A stretch of 64,000 nt of DNA from Podarcis liolepis (lineage: Eukaryota): assembly GCA_965112155.1 (NCBI GenBank), contig OZ218100.1; one strand, written 5' to 3'. Every line of letters starts with the position of its first letter. Within the stretch, counting starts at the first letter, position 1. Of this stretch, positions 22,312 to 42,309 are shown one piece after another. Position numbers and translations under genes: made by a program. The notes under the pieces were generated by a model, which had not been told where the DNA came from, searched no databases, and worked only from the letters and a program-made list of their open reading frames with translations.

Positions 22312-22458
<147 letters not shown>

Positions 22459-22649
22459 TAACCTTGTTATGAATTACAGCATTGTCACAGAAGGATAGGA
22501 CTCCACTGGCTATTATTTTTAATTCAGATCCTAGATTACATTTGGCTATGCCTTTGATGGGTACATGGATTGTCCATAATCACTAATAGAAAAGAAAAAA
22601 ATCTTGCCCTGGAATTAATATATGCATCTGGTCAGATAGATTATGGTGG

Positions 22650-22830
22650 CCTGCAGACACCCCTGCCGGTATACCTGGAAGAAGCAGGTTATCTAGTCAC
22701 GTTTCAGCCTGGTTTCAGTCACAATTTTAGCACCGAAACAGTCTTGGTCACCCTGATCAATGACGTTGATCAGAGATACGGGAATGCAACTCTATTGGTT
22801 CTCCATGATCTCTTAATGATGGTGGGCGGA
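22650..22830 (+). mobile_element. L2 LINE reverse-transcriptase fragment
   Basis: Peptide FQPGFSHNFSTETVLVTLIND. Confidence 0.65.
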
Positions 22831-24347
22831 ACCTTCATCCTGCAGGCCTAACTTAACCCAGCATTTGTTTTATTCAACAACATTTATATACCACTTGATT
22901 GGAATAGAGCGTCTAAGCTGTTTACAATAAATATTTGGCCTACGAGGTCGTTCCCCCCCAAACAGCACCCACCTGCCCTGCATCTGACATCACAATGGTC
23001 TTCAGCTTATGAGTTGGGACCCACAGCCTGATCCAAGGTGGGTCACAGCAGGAACAGTACCACCATATCAAGATATGATAAAAGAAATGGGCTCCCAAAT
23101 GTAAAAGTAGGTCCTGCTTCAAAGTGTGCTCCTGGTTGTGCATTGGCAAGAGAGGCTTGCTGAACTGGCACTAAGAACAAACCACCTGGGATCAGTGTTT
23201 CCATGGGGATCTCCATTGTGCAGCCAATTCCAGCAGAAAGTGGAGCTTGAAGTCAGCACCTTTTAGCTGATAGGCACGGAGTTCAACACTCTGGGATTGG
23301 CCGTGCTACAAAGTTCCCCCTAGGCAACTCCGAAGCCAGCTGACCCTTGAAGGAGCTTGCAAAGGGCCAAGTAGAGCTCTTGTAAAGCCCTTTGTCCCTT
23401 GCAAAGAGCCCTCTCTGCTCAGTGCTTTGAAGCAGTGCACCAAAGCAATGCACACAACTTTGTTTTTAGCCTCGCCTAGCCATAGAGCAAATATTTCAGA
23501 ATCAAATGTCCCAGGAAACATGAATGTCATGCAAGAGAGATTCATTCAAGGAGATTAATTCATGTTTGTTCAGTTTATGCAGATCTGTTTCCTCCTCTGG
23601 CTTGGGGACTTTTCAGGGGCAAAATACTCCCCTTCGGACTATATATGTCACACCAGCATTAGGTATGGAAGGAACAAAATGAGAAAGTGGCATCTAAGAA
23701 ATTAATAGTATCTCTGTTGATGCCTGCTCTTAGGGTAGTAACCAACATTTGGACAATTTCAGAACTTCTGACATTGAAATGTTGGCAAAATAAAAAGCTA
23801 AAGCAAAAACGTTTGATTTTTTTATATAGTGTGATATGATTTTTTTATCATATACACATTAGGGACGTATACATCAACATTTATTAAAGCCTTTCCTCAG
23901 ATTATGGAAAAGAGACTAAGTACTGTAATATTATGATGAACTATACAGAAAATCCCCAAGTTGCAGTGGATCTTCCATAAATGCTTACCTACACATAAAG
24001 AAGAAAGGTATGTTAAATGCATTAGCTTCTGCTAGTAATTACAAGATGTAACTTTATTTTGTTGTTGTTTCTACATTTTTGAAATAAAACATTATTATTA
24101 TTATTATTTTTAAAAAACACCCTGTTCACCCAGGCATTTGGTGATTGAAGGATATTGTTTCTGGCAATTTTTAGGTTATAAGTTGTGAGGATACTTAATT
24201 TGCCTTCAACTGGGCTTTTTTCTCGTATTGTTTCATTGTTTACTGCCCAGGGCTTCATTGGGAGGAATGTTATTTTTTATCAAACAAACAAACAAATAAA
24301 ATAGTTGTCATTACTGATGTCATAGATCGCACATAAGATGGTATATA

Positions 24348-24516
24348 CCGTATTTTTCGCTCTATAACACGCACCCGACCATAACACGCACGTAGTTTTT
24401 AGAGGAGGAAAATCCGTAGGCATGCCACCCATAGGCATTCCCTCCATAACACGCACAGACATTTCCCCTTACTTTTTAGGAGGAAAAAAGTGAGTGTTAT
24501 GGTGCAAAAAATACGG
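24348..24516. mobile_element. Tc1/mariner (Tc2/pogo-like) MITE
   Basis: TA|CCGTATTTTT ... AAAAATACGG|TA. Confidence 0.88.
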
Positions 24517-24672
24517 TAATTTCATTTCCACAAGCAGCCTGTGAATACCCCAAGTATTTGTGACTTCTAGGTTCATTGGCTTTAAATTCCAGATTTTACC
24601 AGGACAATGGAATCTCTCTTTCTCCATCAGCACTCTTAGTTGCATTGGTTATCATCTGGCTTTAATCTTCAT

Positions 24673-24907
24673 AGAACATAGGGAGCTGCCTTATACCAAT
24701 TCAAACTACCCAGTGCGGTATTCATTATCCATATGCCTCAGTCTTCATTATCTATCTAGCTCAGTACTGTTGGCAATGATTGGCAGTAGCTCTCCAGGGT
24801 TTCAGACAAGAGGTCTTCCCAGCCCTACCTAGAGGCGTCAGTTATTGAACCTGGGATCTTTTGCATCTGAAGCATGTGTTCTTTCGTGGAGCCAAGGACC
24901 TTGCCCC
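24673..24907 (-). mobile_element. tRNA-derived SINE (degenerate)
   Basis: Reverse B-box ttgaacctggga and a LINE-derived tail agctgccttatacc. Confidence 0.6.
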
Positions 24908-25961
24908 ATGAATCGCTCTGTTAGTAGAATGGGAAGGGAAGCAATTTTCCATGATCCCCTCCCACAGTAAATCTACCAAAGAACAAAATAAAATAAAATT
25001 GGGATTAAGAGGTTTTCTCAGTATGGTGGAGAGTGTGTATACTATATCTCATTAGTGTAGTCGTGGTGGAAATGCTTTGTGGGATGTGTGTGCAAAAATG
25101 GGGGGATCGAGGATGGTCAGTTGTTGGGGGGGAGTGAGAAATGGGGTGTGTTATCATCTCTTGATCGAACAGGCTTTTGAAACATTTCCTGTAAAAGTCT
25201 CTGTAAAACCTGTGAACAGAGAGAACAGTGGGGTGAGCAGGCGCACTATGGGCAATGATGCCTCCATTATATCACTTTGGAAAATAAAACGATAATCTGC
25301 CTTTACAATCAACCTCAGAGTGTTTCTTTCATTTGCCATATTTTCTGATGCAAAATGCTGCTATCAACGTGTTTTCTGGATTTGAGAACAGGGAGAGAGA
25401 TTCTGATGAAAGAGATAGTTAAGACTGCACCTTTGATTGTACCCCAGATTATAATTTATTGGTAAGGAACCGTGATTTTGAAAGACCATGCGTACTTGTG
25501 AGCCTTTTTTTATTCCACTTTTTGCTCAAGTCTGAATTTTTTGGCTAGTGTTCTGAACTGTTTTTAGTTACTGTAAGAAGGCAGAGCCATAACCATTCCA
25601 TTTCTGGGTAGTCCCGCTAAATTTAGCAAAATTCTGGAGTAAATGTTTTGTTGATTTGCACACTTAGGCCACAGTCCAGCTAAGAGCAGCATAAGCATCA
25701 ATTTCACTCGTTCTGAATTTCTGCCTAAGTCCCTTCCTTGGCGATTTATAGTTTTCCACGTTATATCTCTCTCACTTAGTAGCTGGTGTGCAATCGTTTA
25801 GAGGGTTCAGTCCAGAAATTCCTGAGCAGAATTATCCACTAGATCACAGATAGCCCCTTTCATAAGGCGGCCTTCCATGAACAGAAGGACTTCCTATATC
25901 TGTGCAAGGGCTGATCCAAAGTGGAATGCTAAGATTGGGGAGTCATGGGCTTAATTCATAT

Positions 25962-26870
25962 TGCTAGAGATTTGGGGTAAACCCTAGAAATGAATAAATC
26001 CCAAGGTTTGGGGTTCTTTGTGATACGCAGGGAGAATATAAGCTGCAAGGGGATTCCTGGGCAGGCTGAGGGAAGAGCAGAGCTGTTAGCATTACAATAG
26101 CCATTGAGGGTCTTCAACAACTCCTTGTCCCAGGTGTGACCAGAGACTAGAGATTTGGAAGGTTGCCAGGGTAACTTCTCTGGGGGAGGGCTCTTGCTTC
26201 TGAAAAGAAGAAAGGGTAGATCCATCTTGGTGAGGGTGAAGGAAGGACTGCCTGCAAAGCTCTGGGCCATGCTGTAAAATCTGAATCCCCTCCAATCAGA
26301 CGAAGGGTGTAAATAGGTGAATAAACCCTATTTCTTAAAGCACAACAGTCTCCACTGTGTCTTCTACCCTCAAAGGGGACACAAGACCCCGTGTGTGTGC
26401 CTGAGATCCCATGCACCTTTGTCATGGCTTGGCAGAGAGAGGGACAAGCACCAGGCTTTTGTAACACTGGTGTCAGAAGTGGGATCTGTGTTTCCTGGAG
26501 AGAAGGCCTAGAAGTCAAAAATGGAGGAAGGAATAACAGCAGTCCTTGAGCAGTTGAAGCTGATGCATGAGCACCAAAGGCAAAACAATGGGAGCGGATG
26601 CGAGATGACCATGAGCAGCAGATGCAGCAGCTGAAAGTGTGGGGGAGAAGTCTCCAGGGAGAACAAAGCGTGACTCCATGCCAAGAGCCAGCGGTGGAAG
26701 AAAAAGATACCAAGCTGGCTGAAGCTGAGGAGGGGCTGCTGATTAAAATATCTCTTACGCTTGGGGTGCAAGTGGTGGAAGAAGAAAGCGCCCCAAGAAG
26801 CTATTCCTGATTGACCCTTGGAAACCAGCTGTGGAGGATGGCGAAGAGGACGAGAAAATGGAGGTGCCTA
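25962..26870 (+). mobile_element. Gypsy-like LTR retroelement remnant: 5' LTR (about 25962-26466), tRNA-Leu PBS (26468-26485) and decayed gag start
   Basis: LTR ends GTAACA and contains AATAAA; TGGTGTCAGAAGTGGGAT is complementary to the tRNA-Leu(CAA) 3' end; ATG at 26521 begins a Q/E-rich gag-like peptide. The left boundary is approximate. Confidence 0.75.
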
Positions 26871-29429
26871 AGAACTTGCAAGGGGTACTGCTATTCGATC
26901 TTTCTACTTCCTGGGTGCCTGCTGTGGAAAAAGAGGTGCAGGACAAGAAGGGCTGGCTGGCTAAGTTGCTACTGATACTGCCTGGCAAGCTCTTGGGGAC
27001 AGTATCTCTCAGCCTAACCTTCCTCAACAGACAAAATGAGGGACAACCGTTCCTAGCTGTTCTTGGAGGCAGCTGCGGGAATGCAGATGTAATAAACAAA
27101 ATAGATTAAATATGAACATGCCTGACACAGACAAGGCTACAAATGAGCCTCTCTCTTACCTTGCTCATGCTGATGCTAAATTAATTGAAATATTAATTTC
27201 TAATTAAAAGCACGATACATTCAGTTTTGAGTGTCAGGCTTTGTTTAAGCAAGTATAGCATTCCCCCCCTTTTTTTTTAAACAATTGTGTGAATTTAAAG
27301 TCTTCTCTACTGACAGAATTGTTGTAGCTAATTAGAAAATTCCATTAGAGGTTATGTGTATATGGGAAAGGTGGTTCTCCGCCCCCTGCCCCCCCTCTTT
27401 ATACCTCACTAGATAATTGTTACCTTTTCAGATCACAATAGATGAACTTATAAGTTTGAGCAGCAGCATTCATGCATTTATAATAGCAGACTGGCACGAG
27501 AGAACTCTTCTTAAAAGCTTATGATTATGATGCTGGGTGCTTTATTTTAACATGGGTGCTTTAACCACATTCCCAACTTCTTGCTATCATCCTCTACTTG
27601 CACCACCTGATATTAAAACAGCTGGCACGTTTGCTGCTAATATTATTATGCCTTTCAATTGCTTGCATTTGTGTCCAAGCGCAAATTTCCTAGGTCAGCT
27701 GCTATAGTAACCAGGTGGGGAGGTCAATGTGGACACAGGTGGCTTATATGAAAGTACAACAACAAAGCACCACTGAAGGGGGGAGGACACTGGATGCCCT
27801 TGAGAGGTTGAGGCACAGCGGGTTTGTTCCTGGGGCTGAGTTTACTACTGTTAAGTGGTAGCAGCACCAGCCATGATGCTAGTGCCCCACACTGAGTGAT
27901 GCGATCTTCGCAGCTAGTGCACATCAACACACACACCATACCTTTAGTCTGCTATGTAGTAAAGCTCTTTAGTAAGAGTCTCAGGTTCCAGGTCCCCCCA
28001 ACCCTATGTACCAGTGCCTTATAGTGGACTCAAGCAGCCCACCAGCAAACTACTACAGAAGCTGTTGCTGTCTGCAAATTTCTTGCAGAGGGTACATTCA
28101 GAGGGTCTTTTTTCCCCACACTCTCTTCTGCATTACTTATAAGTCCACCAGAGTATAGTAATTTCAACCTAAGCCAGTACTTCTGTTTAGCAAATTAGTC
28201 TGCATGGCAGTTCTGCTTGCTCCTATGCTAAAGGCATGCATCACAGCACATTAATCTGTTTTGTAAGCTATTAGCAAGCTATTCTTTAATCCCTCAGGTG
28301 TGTGTTTTACCTCTGATCTGTGGAGACCTGCAAGCCCTCACCAGAACTAATTCAGTTCTGGGCCATACCTTCAGGACAAGAGGGCATTTGAGAACCAGCC
28401 AGCGTACCAATCATGTCAGTATGAAGCTGGGGAAATCATCCTGCTGTAGGAGGATCCAGCTGTGAGGTCCTTGAGGCTGTTCATTCCCTGCCTTCTGTTC
28501 CTTCCTTCTTACTGATTGTTGAGTCATGTTGTGGGTTTCTTGTTTTTGAAAGAAATGCGTTATCTTGTGACAAGCGATTATTCTTTATTCCATTCCTTTA
28601 ATGCTCCCCAAATTAAATTAAAGCAACAACAGCAACTTCAGCTTGTGAGAACAATCCACCAGGACTATCTCCTGTGCAGTTGCACAATTGAAACAGATTG
28701 GAAGTGGGCAAGAGAAGAATGTAAGCAGCTCTGATGCTCTCACCAACACGGGGCTGTTCATGAAGAAATAAGCAGTTGGAGGCAGAGATGATCCAAGATG
28801 TTTTGGTGCTTGAGTCAGAAACTCAAAATTCTGTTCCCCAGTGGCAAGCACAGAACAATAAACTACATCATTGGCCATTTTAATTACCCCATTTATACCC
28901 CAAAATCTGCTTCCTAAATCATGAGTAAGGGTGCAATCCAGGTTCTGGCCAGGCGTAATGGGACTGCCATGCTGCTCCCACCAGGGCAGAATGTAGTGGG
29001 CAGCCAAATTGCTGTGGATTTGCTTTGGCAATTGGGCTCAATGCCGTCATGTGATGGCAGCAGGGCCAGCTCAGCATTCAGTGGATACTGGCCTGGCTCA
29101 GCCCCTCTCTGACCCTTGAATACCTATTTCAGTGATTTCCATAGGCTGTTGATAGTGGGGACCCTGCCAATGGTACTCTTACCCGCACATGCGGCAGGCA
29201 AAATGGGGAGCTCCACACTAGCTGAGTGATGCTGGCATCTCTCTCTGGGTGGGAGTCAGCATGGGTGATCAGAGGGACATTTCTGCCCAACCCAACCCTG
29301 TGCAGTCCCACAAAAAGGGGGTTTGGACTGCAGTGTTAGTAGTTCAAATCTGGAAAGAATAATTTGTAGTATGTCCCCAAGCCAGAGGAGGAGACCGAGC
29401 TGCATAAACTGAGCAAACATGAATTAGGC

Positions 29430-29661
29430 CCATGGTCGGCGATGCGGCCCGTGGAGGTCGTTTGACCGGCCCACAAGCCGCCCCCAAACCGAGCTGCCCA
29501 CTCACGTGCGTGGGGACTCGCTTCTGCGGTGCCGAAAATTGGGTCTGCACAGGTGCCGAAAATCGCGAGCAGGTGTGCTCACGCACGCACGTGGTCCAGC
29601 CCATGGAAGGATCTCCGTGGGACCAATCCAGCCCAGGCAAGATAAGCCTTGCTGATCCCTG
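29430..29661. mobile_element. hAT MITE
   Basis: Imperfect terminal repeats; 8-bp TSD aattaggc/aattaggg; CpG-rich interior. Confidence 0.75.
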
Positions 29662-30169
29662 AATTAGGGCTTAGCCACATTTACTCTGCTCCTTCCATGC
29701 AAGGACTGCACTTCAAAGCTATATGTCCTGGCGCCTTTTTCTTTTTGGCTCTGGAACTTTCCCTGCAAAAACCTGCTCTTTGGTGCCCAATCAGAGCAGA
29801 GCAATTGTCAATCCATGGGAAACCCAAATTGACGATTGCTGCAATTGAGCAATAAAGCATGAGTTTTTGTGGGGGAAACTGGGGGGGGGGGGGTGGCCGA
29901 CAAAACAGCTCAAACACAGAGTTTTAAAGCAGGACCTATGCCTGGAAAGTGTGGGTGGATAAGCCCTCTGTTTCCTCGAACAAAGCTCTATTGCACTTTG
30001 CTTCAGTTTCCTGAGACATTTGCATCTGAAATGTTTGCCCTATGACTCAGTCTAGGCTGAAAAATTCTGAACTGTATACATTTCCTGGGGCAACCCCCCC
30101 CCCCCAATTATTTAAGTCCTTTACACTGTATGTTTACTCAGAAATAATAACTGGGTGGTGTTCCAACTA

Positions 30170-30633
30170 CCGTATTTTTCGCCCTATAGGGCGCACTTTT
30201 TCCCCTCCAAAAATGAAGGGGAAATGTGTGTGGGTCCTGTGGGGCGAATGCAGGTTTTCGCTCCAGGCTTGCGCACCGACCCCTCTCGCTCTCCAGGCTT
30301 CAGGAGAGCCCCAGCGCCAGCCCCACAAGGCCGGGGGACAGAGGGAGGCGGAACGCCGCCTTCCCGCTGTCTCCCGAAGTGGTTTGGAGGCTGAGGGCGG
30401 GGAGACCCCGCCGCCAGCCCCACAAGCTCCGGGGACAGTGGGGAGGCGCAGCGCGTCTCCCCGCTGTCCCCGGACCTGATCTGAAGGCGGGCTGCGGGGA
30501 GAAGAGCGCTTCTCCCCGCTGCCGGCCCCACAAGCGCCTGGGGGGGAAATAATTTTTTTTTCTTTATTTCCCCCCAAAAAGAAAACTTGATGCGTCCTAT
30601 GGGTCGGTGCGTCCTATGGGGCGAAAAATACGG
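30170..30633. mobile_element. Young GC/CpG-rich Tc1/mariner (Tc2-like) MITE
   Basis: TA|CCGTATTTTTCGCCCTATAGG ... CCTATGGGGCGAAAAATACGG|TA; internal gccagccccacaag repeats. Confidence 0.92.
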
Positions 30634-31244
30634 TAAATTGTTGCACTAGCACAAGGATTAGCGCCAGCTCAAGGGGACTTCCCTCTCTTGCATGCACCAC
30701 AAGCAATCTCCAAATCTGCTCTGGAAGGTTGGGAGAACCTCCGGAAGAGATTTAGGGGGTGATGGGAGAGGAGAGGGGAAGAACATTTCCTCACAAGGAG
30801 AAATCCTTGGGCTGATGGAACGTTCTCCTGAGGGCTACTTTCAATACAACCACTTGCATTCTCGGTTTTTAACCCCTCCTGTGCTTGTACATTTTAAAAA
30901 TGATCAATTAAGGTAAATGTCTTTGAACAGTTGCTAATAGCTGGAAAAAGGCATATAATTTTTTGAGATGAAAGAATACAAGGGAGCCCCTTGCTCAGTT
31001 TAGGACTGGATTCTTAACCTAGTCTTGTGTACAGTATTTTGAATAGTTGTTTCTAATGGGTTTTACTGATGATTTTATCGTTTTATTCTGTTTGTAAACC
31101 ATCTTTAGGGTTTTCTTTTTACAATCAATCAGTATATAATTTTTACGAAATAAATGAATTATGTTTAATTTAAAATATATATACATGGGGAAACTAGGAT
31201 AGGGAAACATTATTCTACTTGCTTTTTGTGAAAAGGACTGCAAC

Positions 31245-31377
31245 CAGTGCTTTTTTTCTGGGGGTACTCCAGGGAACGCAGTGCCTTTCCCCCCACATGT
31301 TAAAAGTGTGGCATTTACTGTAACAATTTCATGGTGAGTACCGACACCTTTTTATCTAAAAAAAGAAAAAAGCACAG
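31245..31377. mobile_element. hAT MITE just downstream of the MPV17L2-like ORF
   Basis: CAGTGCTTTTTT ... AAAAAAGCACAG; 8-bp TSD actgcaac/actgtaac. Confidence 0.8.
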
Positions 31378-31500
31378 ACTGTAACAATAAAATTCCAGGG
31401 GTGGGGGCAGCATCAAATCTGTTTGTATTTTGAGCCAACACATTCAGTCCAGAGAAGTATACTTGTGCTTCACTTTTGTGCTTCCAGTTCCTTGCAGTCC

Positions 31501-32067
31501 TCAACTTCTGTGTTTGAGATATGAAAGATATATGTTCCACCCCAAGGTCACTACATTCACAAATAGCACTCGATAGCGAGGGGCAAGAAATAGGAAATTG
31601 ACCATCTGAGCTGCTGGCCACACAGTGAGTTCTGCTAAGAAATACTCCGGGAATTTTTCCTTGAATTCCTTCCAGCTGGCTGCCACAGTGTGACCTTGAA
31701 GTAGTCCCATTGTCATGAAATACCAGCACCCGAAAAATGGAGCAAAAAGTTGATCTATTGTTACCTTGATGATGACAACTTTGATGTGTCCAAGTCCTTT
31801 TCTCGGGGTTAGTTTGTCTACCAAGGTGTACCAGTAATGTAGGGGCGGTCCCATGGTGCATCCCGTTATAAACATGTGAGATGCACGCTCAACATCCCAC
31901 TTGTGTTTGGGATTTTGCCTTCGTTCCAAAGACTGCTGGACTAGATCTGCAATTCCCAGCAATAAACCGCTACTCACTGTATTGGTAATGATAAGGTTCC
32001 GCCCTCCAAACAATGGTGCATAGAAGCGGGCCATTGCGGCTAGCTGTTGTATAATACGGGCCCGCAT
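31501..32067 (-). CDS. Intronless Mpv17/PMP22-family protein, MPV17L2-like (probable retrogene), nested antisense in KCNQ5 intron 3
   Basis: Intact 188-aa ORF with four hydrophobic segments and family motifs TNT..SG....AD...Q, GP..HYWY..D, K...DQ, VWP.AQ.VNF and N...LGW..YLSYLK; A at -3 of the ATG; no introns, whereas vertebrate MPV17L2 is multi-exon. Confidence 0.88.
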   Translation of the reverse strand: MRARIIQQLAAMARFYAPLFGGRNLIITNTVSSGLLLGIADLVQQSLERRQNPKHKWDVERASHMFITGCTMGPPLHYWYTLVDKLTPRKGLGHIKVVIIKVTIDQLFAPFFGCWYFMTMGLLQGHTVAASWKEFKEKFPEYFLAELTVWPAAQMVNFLFLAPRYRVLFVNVVTLGWNIYLSYLKHRS

Positions 32068-33019
32068 CTTCCTCTCTTTCTCCTCTGAAACAAATGCATG
32101 CAGATCCGGTAACTATGTTGAGAGCATTTTTCTGAACTTTCAGCCTTCCTTTCCCAGACTGAAGGTATTCTTTTTCAGGGATGGTTGCATTGTGCTTTTA
32201 GGAGGATTATTTCATTGTGAGGACCTGAGGAAGAATGATGTTACAGCAGGCATGTATGATGAGTCACAGGAAATACATCATAGTATTCTAGTGAAGAATT
32301 TTACTTTTGTGCTTTATTATGATGTCATGGCTGATCTTCAGCATCTTGCACACACGTAGCAGAAAAATAAATTGCATCAACTGAACAGGTACATGTAAAT
32401 ATAGCTGTTTCTTACATCACTTAAGATGAGCAATCCAAAGAAAGGAAACTTTTACTTTGCTTACATCCTTTTTATTTCAACAGAACGTAAATGCACTTTA
32501 TCTTAATTGGGCCCTTGATTGATGACCTTGAACAGGATACCTATAAAGTAGTTGCTTTTCCACTAAAGAAAGCATACAAAACAACTTACGATCACAAACA
32601 AACCAAATAACCTTCAGCTTTCATTATGAAGACCTATACAAAACAAATTATAGCAAAGTTTTTAGAGATTCAAATTCGATATAATAGCATACCATTAAAA
32701 ACAACTGCAATAACTTGGAAAATAGCTAGGAAAGGTTTTCAGAACTTCCTGGCTATTTCAGGTGAAAAAATGTTTTCCCTCTTTTCCCTGACCACTGGGC
32801 TGCTGCTGCTTATTTGTACAATCATTTGTGGTTGTGTAACCCCTCTCTACCCACCTCCACACCCCAAAAAGAAGAGAAGTAGCCCAGTGGGCCTTAGGTG
32901 ATCTTACCCTCATAAAGGAGTGGTTCTCACTTTCAGTTTTGGAGGAGGATTGGAACGTACATACAGTAAAATGCATTCCTTCAAATGCAAAATAAGCAGA
33001 GCCATTTACAGTTTTAAAG

Positions 33020-33530
33020 AAAATAACATTTGGCATTGGGGGGGGGGCAATGGAAGAGTGCACCTTTGGGAGTGAGGTCAAGCTGTTGGTAGGTTGCAGC
33101 GTCTGCTGTGGCTGCAGAGACCGATGCGGAAGAGACAAGTTTTGTTGCAGCTGGGGCAGATGAAGGCGTGCAATTGTGCTTCTGCAGAGGCACCATGGCG
33201 TTTCCTCTCTCTGTGCTCCTCCCAGCAGTCATTTTGCCTCTGGTCCCTGCTATGGATACGCAACCTGTCTCCAGGCACCGCAGTTGTCCACAAGGTTGGT
33301 GTTGCCAGCCTTCATGTCACATTTGCAGACCTCTTTATAGCACAGAGTTGGTCTGCCAACAGGCCTGGTACCTGAAGCCAGCTCACTGTAGAGCATGTTC
33401 TTGGGAACCCAGCCATCTTCCATGCTGTGGGCATGACCAAGCCAGCATAGACATAGCTGAGACAGGAGTGTGAACATGTGGGCTTGGGAGGGCATGTATT
33501 TGTTTGAAATTCTGTCCTGCCACATGCAGC
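33020..33530 (-). mobile_element. RTE-clade LINE 3' fragment
   Basis: Peptides WQDRISN, WLGH..MEDGWVPKNMLYSELASG.RPVGRP and FICPSCNKTC..RIGL.SH. Confidence 0.85.
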
Positions 33531-34741
33531 AAAGTGAATTGGGCTTGGAAGGCGTTTGGAAAATAGAAGAGCCAACGTTGATAGATGGGCTACAGAATTC
33601 CTTTGCTAGCTAGAGCTTTCAAGAATTAAAGAGCAAGGGTGGGGCCTGGCAGACAAATCTGGGATTTAGTCTATTATACACAGGTAAGAATAACATCCAT
33701 TATTCTAACTACTTTTTGTCTCCTGCCACGCCTATGTTTGCTTCTGGCTGTGCCCTGCATTGGGATGTGGCCACAAAGGCATGCATCCTTCAGGCAGAAA
33801 ATGGTTTCCCACCCAGTTCTATGTAACATGCCGCAGCAATGCAGGTGGGAAATGACCTATTCATGGATGTTTCATATTCCACATAACTTAAAATACCTTA
33901 AAGTAGGTCCATTGATACTCATGAATCTGAGTATGGCTTTGTTGGATATCATCCTGTGTGTATTTTTGTAAATATGTACCTGAAAATGCATGTAGTGTTC
34001 GGTTGGTATAAGCATATATTTCACTATTTTAATATCAGAATAAGAGATACAACTGAGGCAGTTAAGTATTTTGTTGGGCCAGCTTGCTACAGTTTAGGAG
34101 TATGCAATCCTCTGAGTCACTAACATCCGCATATGCACACTCGGAGGTGTTTATGACAGTGCTTAAGCTGGGGAGAATAATATCTCCTGTCCTTCTTTCT
34201 TCTCTCTGTCAGGACAGGTGAGGGAAATGCCTGAGGGAATGGGGCGAGGAAGATTTGCCTTACTTTGTCAGGCTGCCTCCTTGCAACTGCAGGACTGAGG
34301 TTGACTTTAGGGGAACTTGCTTTAAGGGAATTTTTTAAGTGGTAGGGCAGCCCCAAGAACTCACCCATCTTCTCCTGAACACCCAGTAGATCCATCTACC
34401 TGGGGAAAGTTGTTGTTGTTGTTGTTTTGCACTCAGTGGGGTTTACTTCTGAGTAGAAGTGTCTAAGCTTGTTGTCAGTAAGTACCACAGGCTGGATTTT
34501 CCTGGATTTGCCTGTATGCATGAGCCAAAGGGGTAGCAGTTGAACTCAGCAACTGAAAGTGAAAGAGGGACCTGGCTGGAGCTCAGCTTCCAAAACATTC
34601 CCAGTCCTCACGGTGTCTGGGCTTGCTCATTGCCACTGCCTCAGATTTGCTGAGCTACTCCACTTTGCCTTCCCATAAATATGTCCCCTTGCAAGCCTTT
34701 GAATTCCATCTGGCAGGATGGGGACTTGCTATATGTTAAAG

Positions 34742-35034
34742 CAGAGGTGGGAAACCTCAGGCCTGGGTGCTGAATGTGGCCCCCAGACCTCTCTATCTGG
34801 CCCCAGGCCACATCCCTCATTAGCCCTGCTTCACACCTCAAGTGTGTCCTTGAACTCTGAACATGCCTCTTGCTTGTCTAGATAGTGGGCAGGGCAATGC
34901 GTGTGTGTGGAATTGTACTACACAAAACTATATTATACTTTTGCCTCTGGCCCTGCCCACCACTGGCATGTGGTCTCGAGAAGGTTGCCCAGAGCGAAAT
35001 GAGGCCCTTGAGTGAAAAATGTTCTCCACCCCTA
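34742..35034. mobile_element. hAT non-autonomous element
   Basis: cagaggtgggaaac ... gttctccacccct; TSD tgttaaag/ttttaaag. Confidence 0.7.
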
Positions 35035-35920
35035 TTTTAAAGCAAGTTTGGTTACAAAAATTTGAGGGCTCTGTAATAGGATCCCATGAGTTGTGTGAGG
35101 CTGCTGTCGGGAGGGAAAAGACCATCTGCTTACCAGCATACATGGCAATTTTGTGGACTCTTACAGGCTTCTTTCTATCCTGGATTATTTATTTTAGCCA
35201 ATTCAGTTTAACACAAAGGGTTGTGAATCATACTCAGGGGTAGAGGCATTGGAATTAATGGGCATGGATTTACTCTGAGTAGGACTATGATGACTTACAA
35301 ACCAAGGTGAATAGCTGTCCCCATTTGGGGACGGACGGACCAAAAAGCAATAATATTTGGGGTAATGGCCACTTGAAATTGCTTTCTTCCACATGATTAA
35401 AGGTAGTTTGAAGTGCATTGAGTCCTAAGAGATGCATTCCAAAAATTCCCATTGAGTAGGTAATTCAAATATAGCACCCTTCCCCCCCCCCGAATTTTTG
35501 CTACCAGAGAACACTATTATCGTATTGCACAGCAATAGCTCAAATCAATTTTCACATCCCAGTCCAAGTTGTTACTCGGGATTATTATGAAATCTAAGCC
35601 ACTTTAGTTTCTTATATCATAAAACACTAAGTTGTCTTGCAACTTGAAACAAAATTGTAAAACTGGAGAGGCTGGGTAATTAATATTTCCCATGTTGATA
35701 ATTAACAGGATTTCCATCCAGAGACTATTGTGTATGTTCTTGAGAACTCAAGAGACTTTTTGGCTAAAATGACAACATCTGCAAAAATCAAGACAGAGCC
35801 ATTTATTCAGAGAATTTCCTGAAGATATCTTGCCAATTACTTTTTACTAGTAGGTGATGATTAATCATAACTTGACTGGCTTTAAGCAGATAAATCCAGT
35901 TTCTTTAACAGAGAAAAATG

Positions 35921-36366
35921 GCTCCCCTTTATTACATACACAGCCCAACAAGACAACAACAAGAATCCACCAACAGCATACAAATCAATGTGGCTAACCT
36001 GATCCAAAAACACCCACCCACCCCACTCACACATGAAAACAAAGTTCACCACAGCCAATCACAAACAAATAACCACACCCTAGGCCAACCCCAACCTGCC
36101 TCACCACCAAAGGAAAACAAGCGAATAGCAAAAAGAACCTGCACAAACGACGCTGACACAAAACCCCACACATACATTAAGTAAAATAGAAACATTGCTA
36201 CCCGACTCCACGCCCGCTCACCATGGCTCCCTCCACCTTTTCCCCCCTATTCTTCCTAATGTAACACTAATGTCTCAACAAATGAAACTGATCTGTAGAA
36301 AGAAGAGACATTGCACATACTTTTGTAAACCAAGAAATCTTTAATTAAAAAAGTTTTTAAAAAACC
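35921..36366 (+). mobile_element. 5'-truncated non-LTR retroelement 3' end (L1-like UTR)
   Basis: C/A-rich body, A-rich tail, flanking direct repeat agaaaaatg (35912-35920 and 36367-36375). Confidence 0.55.
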
Positions 36367-36749
36367 AGAAAAATGCTACATGTAAAACATCTAAAAGTAA
36401 ATGTTGGGCAGGATATAGGAATCTAAACACTGTTTTGACATACTTTGTTTGTGCAAATGGAAGGCAGTAGTTTGCATGAATTGTTTGTGGTTACTTTGTT
36501 TTGCTTCATGACAAGACTATCATCCAGGAAAGGGCTATATTAATTTTCAGTGGTGTTGTTGCATGTAACTTTGATGGCGGGACAGAGTTAATATTTTTCT
36601 TTGGTTCTGTGCAGTAGATTTAGAGGAGGCCCACTAAAATTCATGGACATGACTAAGTCCATTGTTTTCATTGGGCCTACTCTGAGTATAACTTAGTTGA
36701 ATATAACTCCTTAAGTTCTAGCATTTGTTTGCCACTGATTCTGTTCACC

Positions 36750-37250
36750 AATACAAAGATGTCACCAATGTATCACCACCATATTAGCAGCTTGTTGGTG
36801 GGCTCCTTAAGGATGACTTATTTAAGTTTGCTCCTGGGCATCTGCATGGCTCCATTTTATGCCAATTTATTTTTGAGAAGCCTGAACAAGTCATAGTTAA
36901 GGAGCCCACCAACAAGCTGCTCATTTGTTGGCGATGCATTTATGACATCCTTTGTCATCTGGACCACGAGCAACAAAAGTTTGGAACAATTTAAGAATGA
37001 TACCAACCATCCATCCCACCATCAAATGTGCACTTAATAGAGTCATTACAAATCATATGGGATGTTCTCCTTGTCACATAAAAAACAAGATAGTCACAGA
37101 TCTTTACAATCAACCCACTGATGCTCACATTCATTTAAAATGGAATTCCTCCAGGACACACAGAAAAACATCATCTGCAGATTGAAATGTTTTTGCAACT
37201 TCAATGAAAACCACCTCAGGTCTGAAGTGGGTGATTTAAGCAATTGAAGA
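36750..37250 (+). mobile_element. Degenerate Penelope-like RT fragment with an inverted duplication
   Basis: MAPFYANLF-like and DLYNQPTDAHIHL-like RT motifs; inverted arms at about 36753-36832 and 36875-36955. Confidence 0.6.
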
Positions 37251-37299
37251 AACACCCAGTTCAGACCCCATAAGCATATATATGAAGTTAGGGTGTCTC

Positions 37300-37700
37300 G
37301 CTCCAGTGTGCATAACTATACACTTGCTTACATTGAATCACATTTGCCATTCACCTATTTTGGAAAGCTCCTTTTGTTTTCTTTTGTTTTCACCATCCTG
37401 AACAATAAGCAAACCCATTACCACCTCATTACTGCTCCCCCCTGCCAATCCAGGTCATTTAACTGCAATTAAGGAAGCAGAGATCCCAATACTGAGCTCT
37501 CTTCCATTGTGAGAAATGTGCTTTTTGGTTTTTAACCTACCGGTATTACCAATCAATAAGAAGACCTGCTCCTTCATCTCACGACTCCTTTTAGCTTTTG
37601 AAAGCTTTTTGAAAATTTAAGAACGCAACATATACTCATGTCCATATCCTTGTTGACACTCTCACAAAAGGTTAGGCAGGGCTTTTCTTTTTGAAGAGCC
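37300..37700 (-). mobile_element. Degenerate CR1 fragment
   Basis: Reverse complement of CR1 RT region (acacttgcttacattgaa, aaagctttttgaaa). Confidence 0.5.
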
Positions 37701-40270
37701 TAGAATTTTGTCTCTCTTTGCTACTATATGCCTCAGTTCCTCAGACTCCCTTCCTGAGAAAATTGGTTAAGACACAGAGGCTTGTAGGTGTTGTTGGACT
37801 ACAACTCCCTGACCATGCTGGCTTGGGCATATGGGAGTTGTGGTTCAAAACACCTGGACAACACCGGGTTGGGGAAGGTGGCTCCAGACCTACACAAACT
37901 AAGAACTGAAGTAATACTAGGGCAACCAGCTCCTTAAGAAACAGAATGACTAACCAGCCTCAGTACAGTAAACAGAATATCACCTGCAAAGCCAGCAGTG
38001 TAGTGTTTGTAGAATGCAAATTCCCTGGATGCCACATGAAGTATGTTAGGAAAGCAACTGCAGGCCTTAGTGCACATTTGAGAAATCATGTCAAAAGCAA
38101 ATAAGGAGCGGGCAGCCGCAATAAAAATAGCCACTTCTAAGTCAGAAACCACAAAGAACTTATGGCTGAAATTCCCAACACATTTCAACACATGTCTATT
38201 ATCAGGCAAGCAAATATCAGTAGACAATAAATAAAATCAGTATGAAAGCAACAATCTATAAAAACCCGGAATAACATAAGCATACAAAATAAATAACTAG
38301 TGTGAAAATTAGTAACGTGCAATCCATAAATACCTTAACAATAACATGAAGATGGCATATGGGTGACCCATGAGAGCGGTGTAATAACTGAAACAGGGCA
38401 GCAGTGATGGGTGAAATCAGGTTGAAACTTTAATGACTATAGCAGGTAAGCAGAGTTGGCATGGCAGTAAGACAAGGATTATTGCCTCATTCCAGTCAGC
38501 CCATCTGAGGTGATCACCCAGCGTTGAACCCTGGTGTGGTGCAAGCCAGGCATCCAGGTTCTCACTGGGCGGCCAAGGTGAAAAATTCCAGCCAGGTAGC
38601 ATGCCTTAGTCAACCCTTTCCTCAGGCCCCTTATGTGATCCCCTTTACTATGCTGATCTTGACCTATGCAATTTTTGCCCCACAAAAGTACAGAATTATC
38701 TCAGCACCTAATGTAAGCAAAGCTTTATGTCACTAGAGGAAAAGGCAGAAAAAACTCCAACTGAGGGCGAGCTCAAGTTGGGAAGGAAGAAACTTCTTTC
38801 TGGCCTTGTAAAGCAGTGACCCGGATAGTTAGTTCAGTGAGGCTCTTGCACCAAGAGCAGGTGAGTGGGAAGCTTGTAGGGCAAAATGGCCACAAATCCT
38901 CATGGCTGAGGCCTTTTAAGCTCTTGGCTCCTCTTGCATCTCCCAAAATCATGCAGGATGCCCAGCATTCTGCGAGACCTCACAAGAGTTGCAAAGAGAT
39001 GCAGCATTACACACACGCACACACACACACACACTGCTTTCTGGGCCCCATGCTGCTGGGCAAAGTCACCCCACACACAAGTTGCCCTTAGAAAAAGGCT
39101 TAAAAGTCTATTGGTTTACAATCCCTAGGTCTGCTCAGAGTAGTCAAGCCCACTACACAATGAGATAGCTCTATAATTTGAGCTATGAAAAGGCCAACAC
39201 ACAACATTCAAACTAGCTGTGACTTTTCCAGTAGGTTGTGTGTAAAATAATAGTTAAAACTGTGGGGTAAATTCAGATTCCAGAAGGATGAAAAGCCTGT
39301 TTAATGCTGGTTTAAAATCTTGTTTAACTTTTTTTTATATTACCTTTCCATATCTGCCCTAGTGGTTCTCCCAGGCATTCAGAGCTTTTTTTGGGGGGGG
39401 GGGGGGTTGCTGGGAGAGGAGAGGGAGGGGAGGTTCTATTCCACATGTGGAATTTGTTCTGTGACCACAATAGCCTCATCTACAAGCACACCAGTCTACA
39501 ACTATCTGCATTGAAAGGTTCTTTGGAACAATTTTTACTACCTCTGCTCCCATTGAATTTGATCTTTATCTAGAAATACCATAGAATTTGCCCCCCCCAA
39601 AAAAAAACCCCAGCCACTTTTAAGTTTTTCAGGACATGCGAAAGCTCTAAATTTTATCTAAATGCCAGTTTCTGAAAGGTGCAAAATGCTTTCAACACTC
39701 ATCCATCTCAGACCTTTGATGTACTGAGGGTTGTATTTCAAGAGTTGGCTGCCATCTCCCATGACAGTGAGAAGGTTATTAGAGCAATGTGACTCTGCTG
39801 CTTTGGTAACCTCTGAATTATGGAATCACTTGGGATAAGTGGATCTTGTGTGAAATTCCAGAATCGGCACAGGGAAAGGTAGCTTACCACAGAAAACATT
39901 CCCATTTCAGGGCTTCATTAAGAACATGATTAAATAGTCCCATAGATTTTTTTTGGGGGGGGGGGTAGGGAAGCAGCTACAATAAAGCATCTGAAACTCA
40001 GGACATGGCAATAACAGGTCCATTGCCCTGCCTATAAGATAACAAAACAGGTAGCTTTTTCGTTATCAACACTTTGCTTGGGGAAAGGTGCAAATGATTT
40101 GAAATGTGGCTAGAACTGGTATGCATACAGGGAAGTAAGCTCCATGGACATATATTTAATCAGATAGCTCCACTGGTCCATTATAACAAATTCATAACAT
40201 CAGTAAAATATTAAATTTATTAGTAAGAACAAATAGTCATATGGCAGTTCATCTAGTCTGAAATAGAATA

Positions 40271-40512
40271 CAGTGGTACCTCGGGTTAAGAACTTAATTC
40301 GTTCAAGAGGTCCGTTCTTAACCTGAAACTGTTCTTAACCTGAAGCACCACATTAGCTAATGGGGCCTCCCGCTGCCACCACGCCACCGCTGCGCGATTT
40401 CTGTTCTCATCCTGAAGCAAAGTTCTTAACCTGAGGTACTATTTCTGGTTTAGCAGAGTCTGTAACCTGAAGTGTCTGTAAGCTGAAGCGTATGTAACCC
40501 AAGGTACCACTG
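40271..40512. mobile_element. Tc1/mariner-type MITE, same family as 19173-19398 but opposite orientation
   Basis: TA|CAGTGGTACCTCGGGTTA ... TAACCCAAGGTACCACTG|TA. Confidence 0.9.
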
Positions 40513-41139
40513 TACTGTGAACTCAAAAGCTCACATGCTGTATTGTAAACATTAGTTTGTCCTAATAAATACAGTATTTTGCTTCCCAATATGACACTGG
40601 CAAATCTTAAAACACTTACTAGGAAGTACCAGTAAACCCTATTGTGCATTGTGGGACTTATTTCTAAGTAGATAAACATTTAAGATTAAGCTGTCACTCC
40701 CATGTCAGTGGGTTTAGATTGAGAATGGAATAGATGCTAATCTAATGGAAAGTAAAATGATTCAAATATATAAGCAAAGCATGCTATACACCCTTTCCTG
40801 GACTTTCAAATTTCAGATGAAGGAATTGTACCTTCCTACATAAAAGCTTTGCCAATGAAAAGCTAGTATGTCAGCAGAATGCTAATCTAATACACGAATT
40901 GCTGCTATAAATTTATTGCATCAGCATGATGATTCCATCCCTGTGGTGCATTTTCAGTTATTATCACTGCTCCCGATTTTCTCAGTGAAGGGGTAGCCAA
41001 AGGGGGCAAATGTATGGCTAACAATTCCATCTATTAACAGGAACAGAAAAGAGTGCGCTCTTCCAATTAAATAGCTACTCTTCAAATTATTACAATTTGA
41101 CTGGTTGCCAATTATTTTGCGATTCAAGAATGCTTCCAC

Positions 41140-41560
41140 CAATACCAACCTGGCTGTGTATTGAGATCTGCAGGGGAGGCCCCATTTGTGATCCCATTGC
41201 TGAGTGAGTTTCAAAGCATGGGGGTACATGGGAGGGCCTTCTCTGCTCTGGCACCACACTTATGGAATTATGTCCCCTTCGAGGTGTGCCCAGCTTCAAC
41301 ATTATTTTGCCAATTAGTGAAGATGTACCTGTTTCAAACATTGGAGTGGGGTAAAGTACATTGTGGATGGAGAGTGTACTTTACTTTATTCCTGGTGATG
41401 GTGGTGTTTACTGGGCAATCTATTATTTACTCTAATTTCATATATTGCTAATTATGGTTTTTAAGGTAAATGAATCTTCTGTCCTGGAACTTTTGGGTGA
41501 AGGGCAACTTATAAATAAATAAATAAATAAATAAATAAATCATACATACATACATACATG
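41140..41560 (+). mobile_element. L2 LINE 3' end with (AAAT)n/(CATA)n tail
   Basis: Peptide RAFSALAPHLWN followed by a T-rich UTR and the tail. Confidence 0.75.
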
Positions 41561-41810
41561 TTTGCAAGTTAAAAACAAACCAACCCATAGATCAGAACAA
41601 AAAATTAAGCATTGTTGAAAACTCCCTTAATGTTCCCAATACTAGGTAGGTGAGCTAGAACTTTTAGTGAGAGAGACTTATATTAGATCCTTTTCAGTTA
41701 AAGGTTTGGTCCCATGAAATGGGCACACACAAATTAGATGAGGACTGTAGAGCACATGCCTGAAATAACTGGAGGCTGTCTAAGAACTTGGGTAAGATGA
41801 CTGTGTATTA

Positions 41811-41861
41811 TGTATTCTTGTAAATTGTGTATTCTTGTAAATTGTGTATTCTTGTAAATTG
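41811..41861. repeat. 17-bp tandem repeat, 3 copies (tgtattcttgtaaattg)
   Basis: Read directly. Confidence 0.9.
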
Positions 41862-41988
41862 AGTAAAGGGGCATTTCTTTTGATAGAACTTAGCACTGGT
41901 CAATGCAACATTTTATAGTATTGTATTTTTTGCATTTATACGGATGTTGTTGTTACAATTCACTTTCTTTCAGCATAAAGACTCTTAA

Positions 41989-42309
<321 letters not shown>

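Follow-up and report, generated by a model that had tools for sequence, protein, structure and literature searches.

A probable ancient MPV17L2 retrogene nested antisense in a KCNQ5 intron of squamate reptiles

A minus-strand gene in a stretch of 64,000 nucleotides from Podarcis liolepis (contig OZ218100.1; hereafter the window) encodes a protein of 188 residues that, judged by its sequence, is a divergent paralogue of MPV17L2 within the Mpv17/PMP22 family. The best explanation, and one that is considered probable, is that this is a working and ancient intronless copy that was retroposed antisense into intron 3 of KCNQ5 and has been kept by selection. The gene itself is already annotated in RefSeq, in at least ten squamates, where it carries the same name as its parent, "mpv17-like protein 2". 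What is new here is its identity as an ancient, lineage-specific retrogene, which is well supported. Because RefSeq gives both genes one name, squamate orthology tables may mix parent and paralogue. Full-text searches of the literature for MPV17L2 in connection with retrogenes, squamates, lizards or KCNQ5, and for the phylogeny of the MPV17 family, found no paper describing the gene.

MPV17L2 belongs to the small number of membrane-bound factors known to be required for construction of the mitochondrial ribosome. Its relative MPV17 is a disease gene in humans, and what the protein does at the molecular level is a matter of debate. A second copy of MPV17L2 kept for some 200 million years would be a natural experiment on which residues matter, with a defined set of fixed changes: two acids neutralised, W147L, and the tail removed. 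It would also provide a dated case in which a retrogene lies antisense within a large neuronal gene.

The window is free of N runs. The reading frame is unbroken from ATG to TGA in a single exon of 188 codons plus the stop codon. An in-frame TAG lies 16 codons 5' of the ATG, so that this ATG is the earliest possible start. The Pfam profile PF04117 (Mpv17_PMP22) matches residues 121–182 with E=7.9e-24 and 83.9 bits (cut-off 27), and the match spans the full profile, positions 1–62 of 62. The frame and this full-profile match confirm the original prediction of an intact 188-codon MPV17L2-like ORF. The basic, presequence-like N-terminus that had been described is present too, with R2, R4, R14 and R23 standing before the first acidic residue, E48. 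The length of 188 codons is not in itself beyond chance, because an unrelated ORF of 188 residues occurs 5 kb away; the significance of the frame rests on homology, not on length. That second ORF (26147..26713, minus strand) is of exactly 188 residues, starts with TTG, and has a low-complexity translation without evident homology.

The structure predicted for the paralogue by AlphaFold2 from an alignment of 46 sequences is all-helical, with a pLDDT of 89.9 and a pTM of 0.82. Helices are predicted at residues 2–20, 22–51, 59–86, 92–123, 128–160, 163–173 and 175–186. No solved structure resembling the paralogue was found by sequence search of the PDB or by Foldseek.

Table 1. Features of the window that bear on the MPV17L2 paralogue and its host gene
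Feature	Position	Strand	Basis
Squamate MPV17L2 paralogue, full CDS	31501..32067	-	ORF, Pfam PF04117, database relatives, AlphaFold2 model
Possible transcript body	31403..32225	-	One X1 contig, depth 26 vs 3–13; X1 only guessed to be RNA
Candidate 3' splice acceptor (ttcttcctcag/g)	32224..32236	-	About 158 nt 5' of the ATG
KCNQ5 exon, 127 nt, S2–S3	22312..22438	+	phmmer vs PDB 9j38, residues 76–118, E=1.4e-23
KCNQ5 exon, 176 nt, S3–S4 voltage-sensor	42104..42279	+	phmmer vs PDB 9j38, residues 116–177, E=1.1e-30
Host KCNQ5 intron, 19,665 nt	22439..42103	+	Flanking exons adjacent in protein; splice sites read

The two exons that flank the gene encode residues 76–117 and 118–176 of human KCNQ5 (PDB 9j38). 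The 127-nt exon has an acceptor ending in TTTAG and a donor beginning with GTAAGT; in the 176-nt exon these are TTTCAG and GTAAGG. Since both exons are contiguous in the KCNQ5 protein, the MPV17L2-like ORF lies inside one intron, in antisense orientation. Exons of 127 and 176 nt are presumably exons 3 and 4, as in the KCNQ2–5 genes, which makes the host intron intron 3. The nesting antisense in KCNQ5 intron 3 that had been proposed agrees with the flanking exons and their splice sites, the intron number being taken from this presumed exon numbering. In the pore exon near 49.8 kb, 37 of 37 residues are identical to KCNQ5, and 34 of 37 to KCNQ4. More KCNQ5 exons can be seen as plus-strand open stretches at 43.3–43.5, 49.8–49.9, 52.4–52.5 and 55.9–56.2 kb. 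They correspond to S5, the pore, the end of S6 and the exon-8 pair; the Pfam Ion_trans profile backs S5 and the pore only.

Relatives of the protein were collected by a word-based protein search. The paralogue set consists of 19–20 proteins of 185–192 residues and one model of 238 residues, and it takes in six unnamed proteins from public read assemblies. It covers Gekkota, Scincoidea (Hemicordylus), Lacertoidea, Anguimorpha, Iguania and Serpentes, with geckos, cordylids, lacertids, amphisbaenians, teiids, anguids, anoles and snakes among the taxa, at identities from near-identical down to 60%. The exact 188-residue protein is absent from the searched collection. Its nearest relative there is Podarcis raffonei XP_053237236, which has one difference (99% identical), and Lacerta agilis XP_032999134 is 97% identical. 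Identity is 82% in Rhineura, 78% in Anolis sagrei, 73% in Salvator and Elgaria, 68% in the gecko Heteronotia, 60–63% in Vipera, Thamnophis and Laticauda, and 60–62% in Candoia and in two Hemicordylus copies.

The remaining matches come from frogs, tuatara, alligator, turtles, birds, mammals and fish. These are canonical MPV17L2 proteins of 206–221 residues, with 45–54% identity. All of the named matches (119 of 119) are MPV17L2, and no MPV17, MPV17L or PXMP2 protein is among the matches. No paralogue-type protein was found outside squamates among 5.8 billion clusters.

Some members of the set have features of their own. Hemicordylus capensis has two deeply diverged paralogue copies, P0014 and P0016, with branches of 0.36 and 0.39, on the same 459-Mb chromosome. 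They are not sisters in the tree, which suggests that the paralogue was duplicated again long ago in the cordylid/skink group. Three models have odd ends, which are probably artefacts. The Thamnophis elegans model (P0017) has an N-terminal extension of 50 residues, the C-terminus of the Laticauda model (P0018) is replaced, and a Podarcis muralis Ensembl fragment (P0207) begins within the 5' leader in a different frame and would require a non-GT donor.

The canonical gene is present alongside the paralogue. A query with tuatara MPV17L2, followed by the resulting clusters, recovered canonical proteins of 208–215 residues, and both genes occur in Podarcis raffonei, P. muralis, Zootoca, Lacerta agilis (partial), Elgaria, Heteronotia, Hemicordylus, Thamnophis, Vipera, Rhineura and Anolis sagrei. 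The 188-residue protein is thus a paralogue and not an orthologue. The idea that the copy had replaced its parent in squamates arose since the first protein search showed no canonical squamate protein; it is ruled out by the presence of the canonical gene in the same species.

In lacertids the contig with the parent measures 12–14 Mb (97 Mb in Zootoca), and the one with the paralogue 118–125 Mb. Different contigs carry the two genes in Elgaria, Heteronotia, Hemicordylus and Thamnophis as well. Vipera has parent and paralogue together on a 370.6-Mb contig. Several parents have annotated isoforms X1/X2/X3, which implies more than one exon. The expectation of a multi-exon parent elsewhere in the genome was therefore borne out as regards the canonical gene and, for the most part, its separate contig, while the multi-exon structure is read only from the annotated isoforms.

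Rhineura has three MPV17L2-type genes: the canonical gene P0209, the 188-residue paralogue P0002, and an extra one, P0127 (Rhineura floridana XP_061482058). P0127 occurs in Rhineura only and groups as sister with the canonical gene of that species (98/94). In it, three invariant positions, G34, G69 and D105, carry radical substitutions, the C-terminus is scrambled, and its branch of 0.20 is four-fold longer than the 0.045 of the true Rhineura canonical gene. It shares a 211.9-Mb contig with Rhineura's 188-residue paralogue. P0127 is a young copy that, on its sequence, is probably decaying and annotated as a protein. A reading of P0127 as the degenerating canonical gene of Rhineura is ruled out, the true canonical gene being P0209. 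Both P0127 and the 188-residue paralogue are extra MPV17L2-derived copies named "mpv17-like protein 2", but only P0127 looks as if it is decaying.

The paralogue and canonical MPV17L2 (human Q567V2) are about 50% identical over the whole protein and have the same Pfam domain. Common to both are 50 conserved columns, including DQ, WYF, WP..Q..NF and GW.xYLSYLKH, and a basic N-terminus. Alignment A1 shows the motifs AELTVWP and WNIYLS in the paralogue where the canonical protein has ADWCVWP and WDTYLS. Relative to the canonical protein, the paralogue has a one-residue deletion after DQxxA. These differences from human MPV17L2, the deletion included, had been proposed earlier, and all of them are visible in the alignment. 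The paralogue is also without the canonical acidic C-terminal tail of 20–30 residues, which leaves 188 residues against 206–221. Finally, the paralogue is a single exon at a different locus from canonical MPV17L2.

Seven columns are at least 90% fixed in each group and yet different: A38G, E124Q, F142Y, D146E, W147L, Y169F and D178N. Five of these seven clade-specific changes fall within residues 124–178, in the Pfam core. The features that are invariant in canonical proteins, namely E124, D146, W147, Y169 and D178, the residue missing after the DQ motif, and the tail, are not found in the paralogue.

Trees of 40 and 53 proteins were built with IQ-TREE under LG+C20, with no MPV17 or MPV17L outgroup. 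All of the short copies group in a single clade (100/100), whose stem measures 0.94–0.95 substitutions per site. Within it, geckos and the cordylid group split first, and lacertids with Rhineura, and snakes, each form a group. This order is roughly that of the squamate tree, which means that the last common ancestor of living squamates already had the gene. Judged from these trees, the origin of the paralogue is earlier than crown squamates and probably earlier than the split from tuatara. The suggestion that the copy is old, and not a recent processed pseudogene, fits with an identity to canonical MPV17L2 of only about 50%. In crown squamates, the paralogue has evolved 2.3 times as fast as its parent in the same eight species, which is far slower than along its own stem.

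The clade is nested within vertebrate MPV17L2, above coelacanth and amphibians. In both maximum-likelihood trees its sister group is the canonical MPV17L2 of all amniotes (86/84 and 88/85), as would be expected of a much older duplicate from the amniote or tetrapod stem. Such a duplicate could have arisen through RNA, or through DNA with later intron loss, and would have been kept only by squamates, with losses in mammals, turtles, archosaurs and tuatara. This origin is regarded as unlikely, although several observations favour it. Constraining the clade to group with canonical squamates costs 16–18 log-likelihood units (AU p=0.038–0.039). The states that tuatara and squamate canonical proteins have in common (ELEDNF, KMDW, WPP) are missing from the paralogue, which shows the fish/amphibian rather than the amniote state at EF.EKF, AQM.NF and GLLLG, and its best-scoring non-squamate matches are frogs.

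However, a constraint to group with canonical lepidosaurs costs 3.5–4.7 units and is not rejected (AU p=0.17–0.21). A stem of 0.94 makes attraction toward the base likely, and L/M and L/F reversals are easy. Moreover, the much older origin requires four or more independent losses, and not one protein of the paralogue type from outside squamates appears in the 5.8 billion clusters. A small chance is left to the wider version of this idea, in which a pre-Lepidosauria, amniote-stem duplication gave the MPV17 family of vertebrates a fifth member, which survives only in squamates and has a new activity or location. If it were true, the neutralised acids and the lost tail would mark that new activity or location, which might be connected with the unusual biology of squamate mitochondria. 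In the preferred reading, the copy arose earlier than crown squamates and probably earlier than the divergence from tuatara; a stem this long tends to draw a clade toward the base and limits the dating to these bounds.

The evidence points to purifying selection on the paralogue. About 20 sequences, which represent all major squamate groups, have kept its open frame at near-constant length. Further evidence is provided by a contig from run X1, from a close relative, which covers 31403–32225 at 98% identity. For this contig 13 of 16 differences are listed. The eight that fall in the ORF are all third-position and synonymous (P ~7e-6 on site counts), and dN/dS would be about 0.11 even if the remaining three were all non-synonymous. 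In seven flanking X1 contigs, 40 of 1,895 positions differ (2.1%), and indels are present. From this flank rate about eight non-synonymous differences would be expected in the ORF, and none is listed.

A neutral processed pseudogene whose frame is open by chance, or a propagated artefact of gene prediction, is highly improbable on these data. It would fit with the lack of a CpG island upstream of the ORF, where observed/expected CpG is 0.2–0.4, and with the occurrence of a homology-free 188-residue ORF nearby. It would also fit with RNA-seq, in which zero reads lie on the ORF or its unique flanks in X15–X17, three partly sampled bulk runs with the same species label (12–13% sampled, tissue not given). 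But chance does not readily give intact frames of equal length in about 20 sequences over some 200 million years, nor a clade with its own invariant residues, nor listed ORF differences that are synonymous only while the flanks diverge by 2% with indels. The young extra copy of Rhineura shows what decay looks like. A selected, functional paralogue, as had been suggested, is supported by the intact frames across squamates, the synonymous-only listed differences and the paralogue's own fixed residues. Neither disrupted orthologues nor near-identity to the parental mRNA was found.

An origin through RNA is suggested by the structure of the locus. The coding sequence has one exon, lies in the intron of an unrelated gene and is mostly on a different chromosome from its parent, which together give the classical picture of retroposition. 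The ORF aligns with the family without a break, from Met1 to the KHRS end. No poly(A) remnant or convincing target-site duplication was seen flanking it, and a reading of the ORF and its flanks agrees with the earlier description of a copy with no introns, no poly(A) and no target-site duplication. Because the copy is so old, both marks are expected to have eroded, and their absence is weak evidence either way. One direct repeat, matching at 14 of 15 positions (31469–83 and 32300–14), was considered as a target-site duplication and rejected. It is misplaced, lying 18 nt past the stop and lacking a poly(A), and a match this good is about what chance would produce.

The most likely series of events is as follows. 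An MPV17L2 mRNA would have been reverse-transcribed and inserted antisense into KCNQ5 intron 3, before the divergence of living squamates and probably also before the squamate–tuatara split. A phase of rapid change may have come next, along a stem of some 0.94 substitutions per site, in which new residues became fixed at positions invariant in vertebrate MPV17L2. During this phase the residue after the DQ motif and the acidic C-terminal tail would have been lost. Since then the copy would have been held by purifying selection beside the canonical gene, changing about 2.3 times faster than it.

Functional retrogenes nested in introns include mouse Mcts2 in H13, Nap1l5 in Herc3 and U2af1-rs1 in Commd1. 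Like these, the paralogue is an intronless copy inside the intron of an unrelated gene, with a conserved open frame. Unlike these, which are mammalian and mostly imprinted, it is squamate-wide, far older, and antisense to a neuronal channel gene.

MPV17, yeast Sym1 and PXMP2 are channel-forming members of the family. They belong to the same family as the paralogue, with the small all-helical membrane fold that is predicted for it here, but are much more distant in sequence. According to one report (PMC4117752), MPV17L2 is a factor of the inner mitochondrial membrane that is required for mitoribosome assembly and that sediments together with the large mitoribosomal subunit. The paralogue has kept the family core and the basic N-terminal helix, which makes a role like that of MPV17L2, in the inner membrane of mitochondria, the most likely one. 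The protein may thus be located in this membrane, with either an MPV17L2-like role in mitoribosome biogenesis or a channel-like role.

The loss of two acids through E124Q and D178N, together with W147L and the missing tail, suggests on sequence grounds that the function has become specialised or shifted. This could have gone further, such that the gene is functional but no longer MPV17L2-like, with its product in another membrane (the peroxisome or another organelle) or with a role limited to certain tissues. This alternative is less likely than an MPV17L2-like role, yet it deserves some weight. Duplications within the MPV17 family often bring a new location, according to the same report (PMC4117752). 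Seven fixed changes at canonical-invariant sites, with two conserved acidic residues lost, the missing C-terminal tail and the fast stem phase would all suit a changed role, and silence in the three bulk RNA-seq libraries (12–13% sampled) fits restricted expression. It is opposed by the basic, acid-free N-terminal helix and the 50 shared conserved columns, both of which are retained, and the reading with a role like that of MPV17L2, in the mitochondrial inner membrane, is preferred.

A possible transcript of the gene is seen in run X1. The contig over the ORF is 822 nt long and has a depth of 26, compared with 3–13 in the flanking contigs, so that coverage of the ORF is three times that of its flanks, X1 being only guessed to be RNA. 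Its upstream end, at 32225, coincides with the candidate acceptor ttcttcctcag/g, and the depth steps from 26 to 8 there. Contig and acceptor are compatible with a transcript that has a spliced 5' untranslated exon, which is a lead only. The in-frame TAG lies downstream of the candidate acceptor, so that any upstream exon would be untranslated. A second acceptor-like sequence, tttgtttcag/agg, lies at 32084–32092 on the minus strand, 23 nt upstream of the ATG.

A search of Rfam gave no match between 27 and 36 kb. In the same region, two segments draw many partial RNA-seq reads, and the three bulk runs gave reads on these segments only. The first, at 30076–30666, is GC-rich, with a GC content of up to 0.62 and an observed/expected CpG of 0.6–0.7. 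The second, a short one, is at 33031–33227. In both, X1 depth reaches up to 946, and opposite-strand joints occur at 30260–30303. These two segments look like copies of expressed repeats with an internal inverted repeat.
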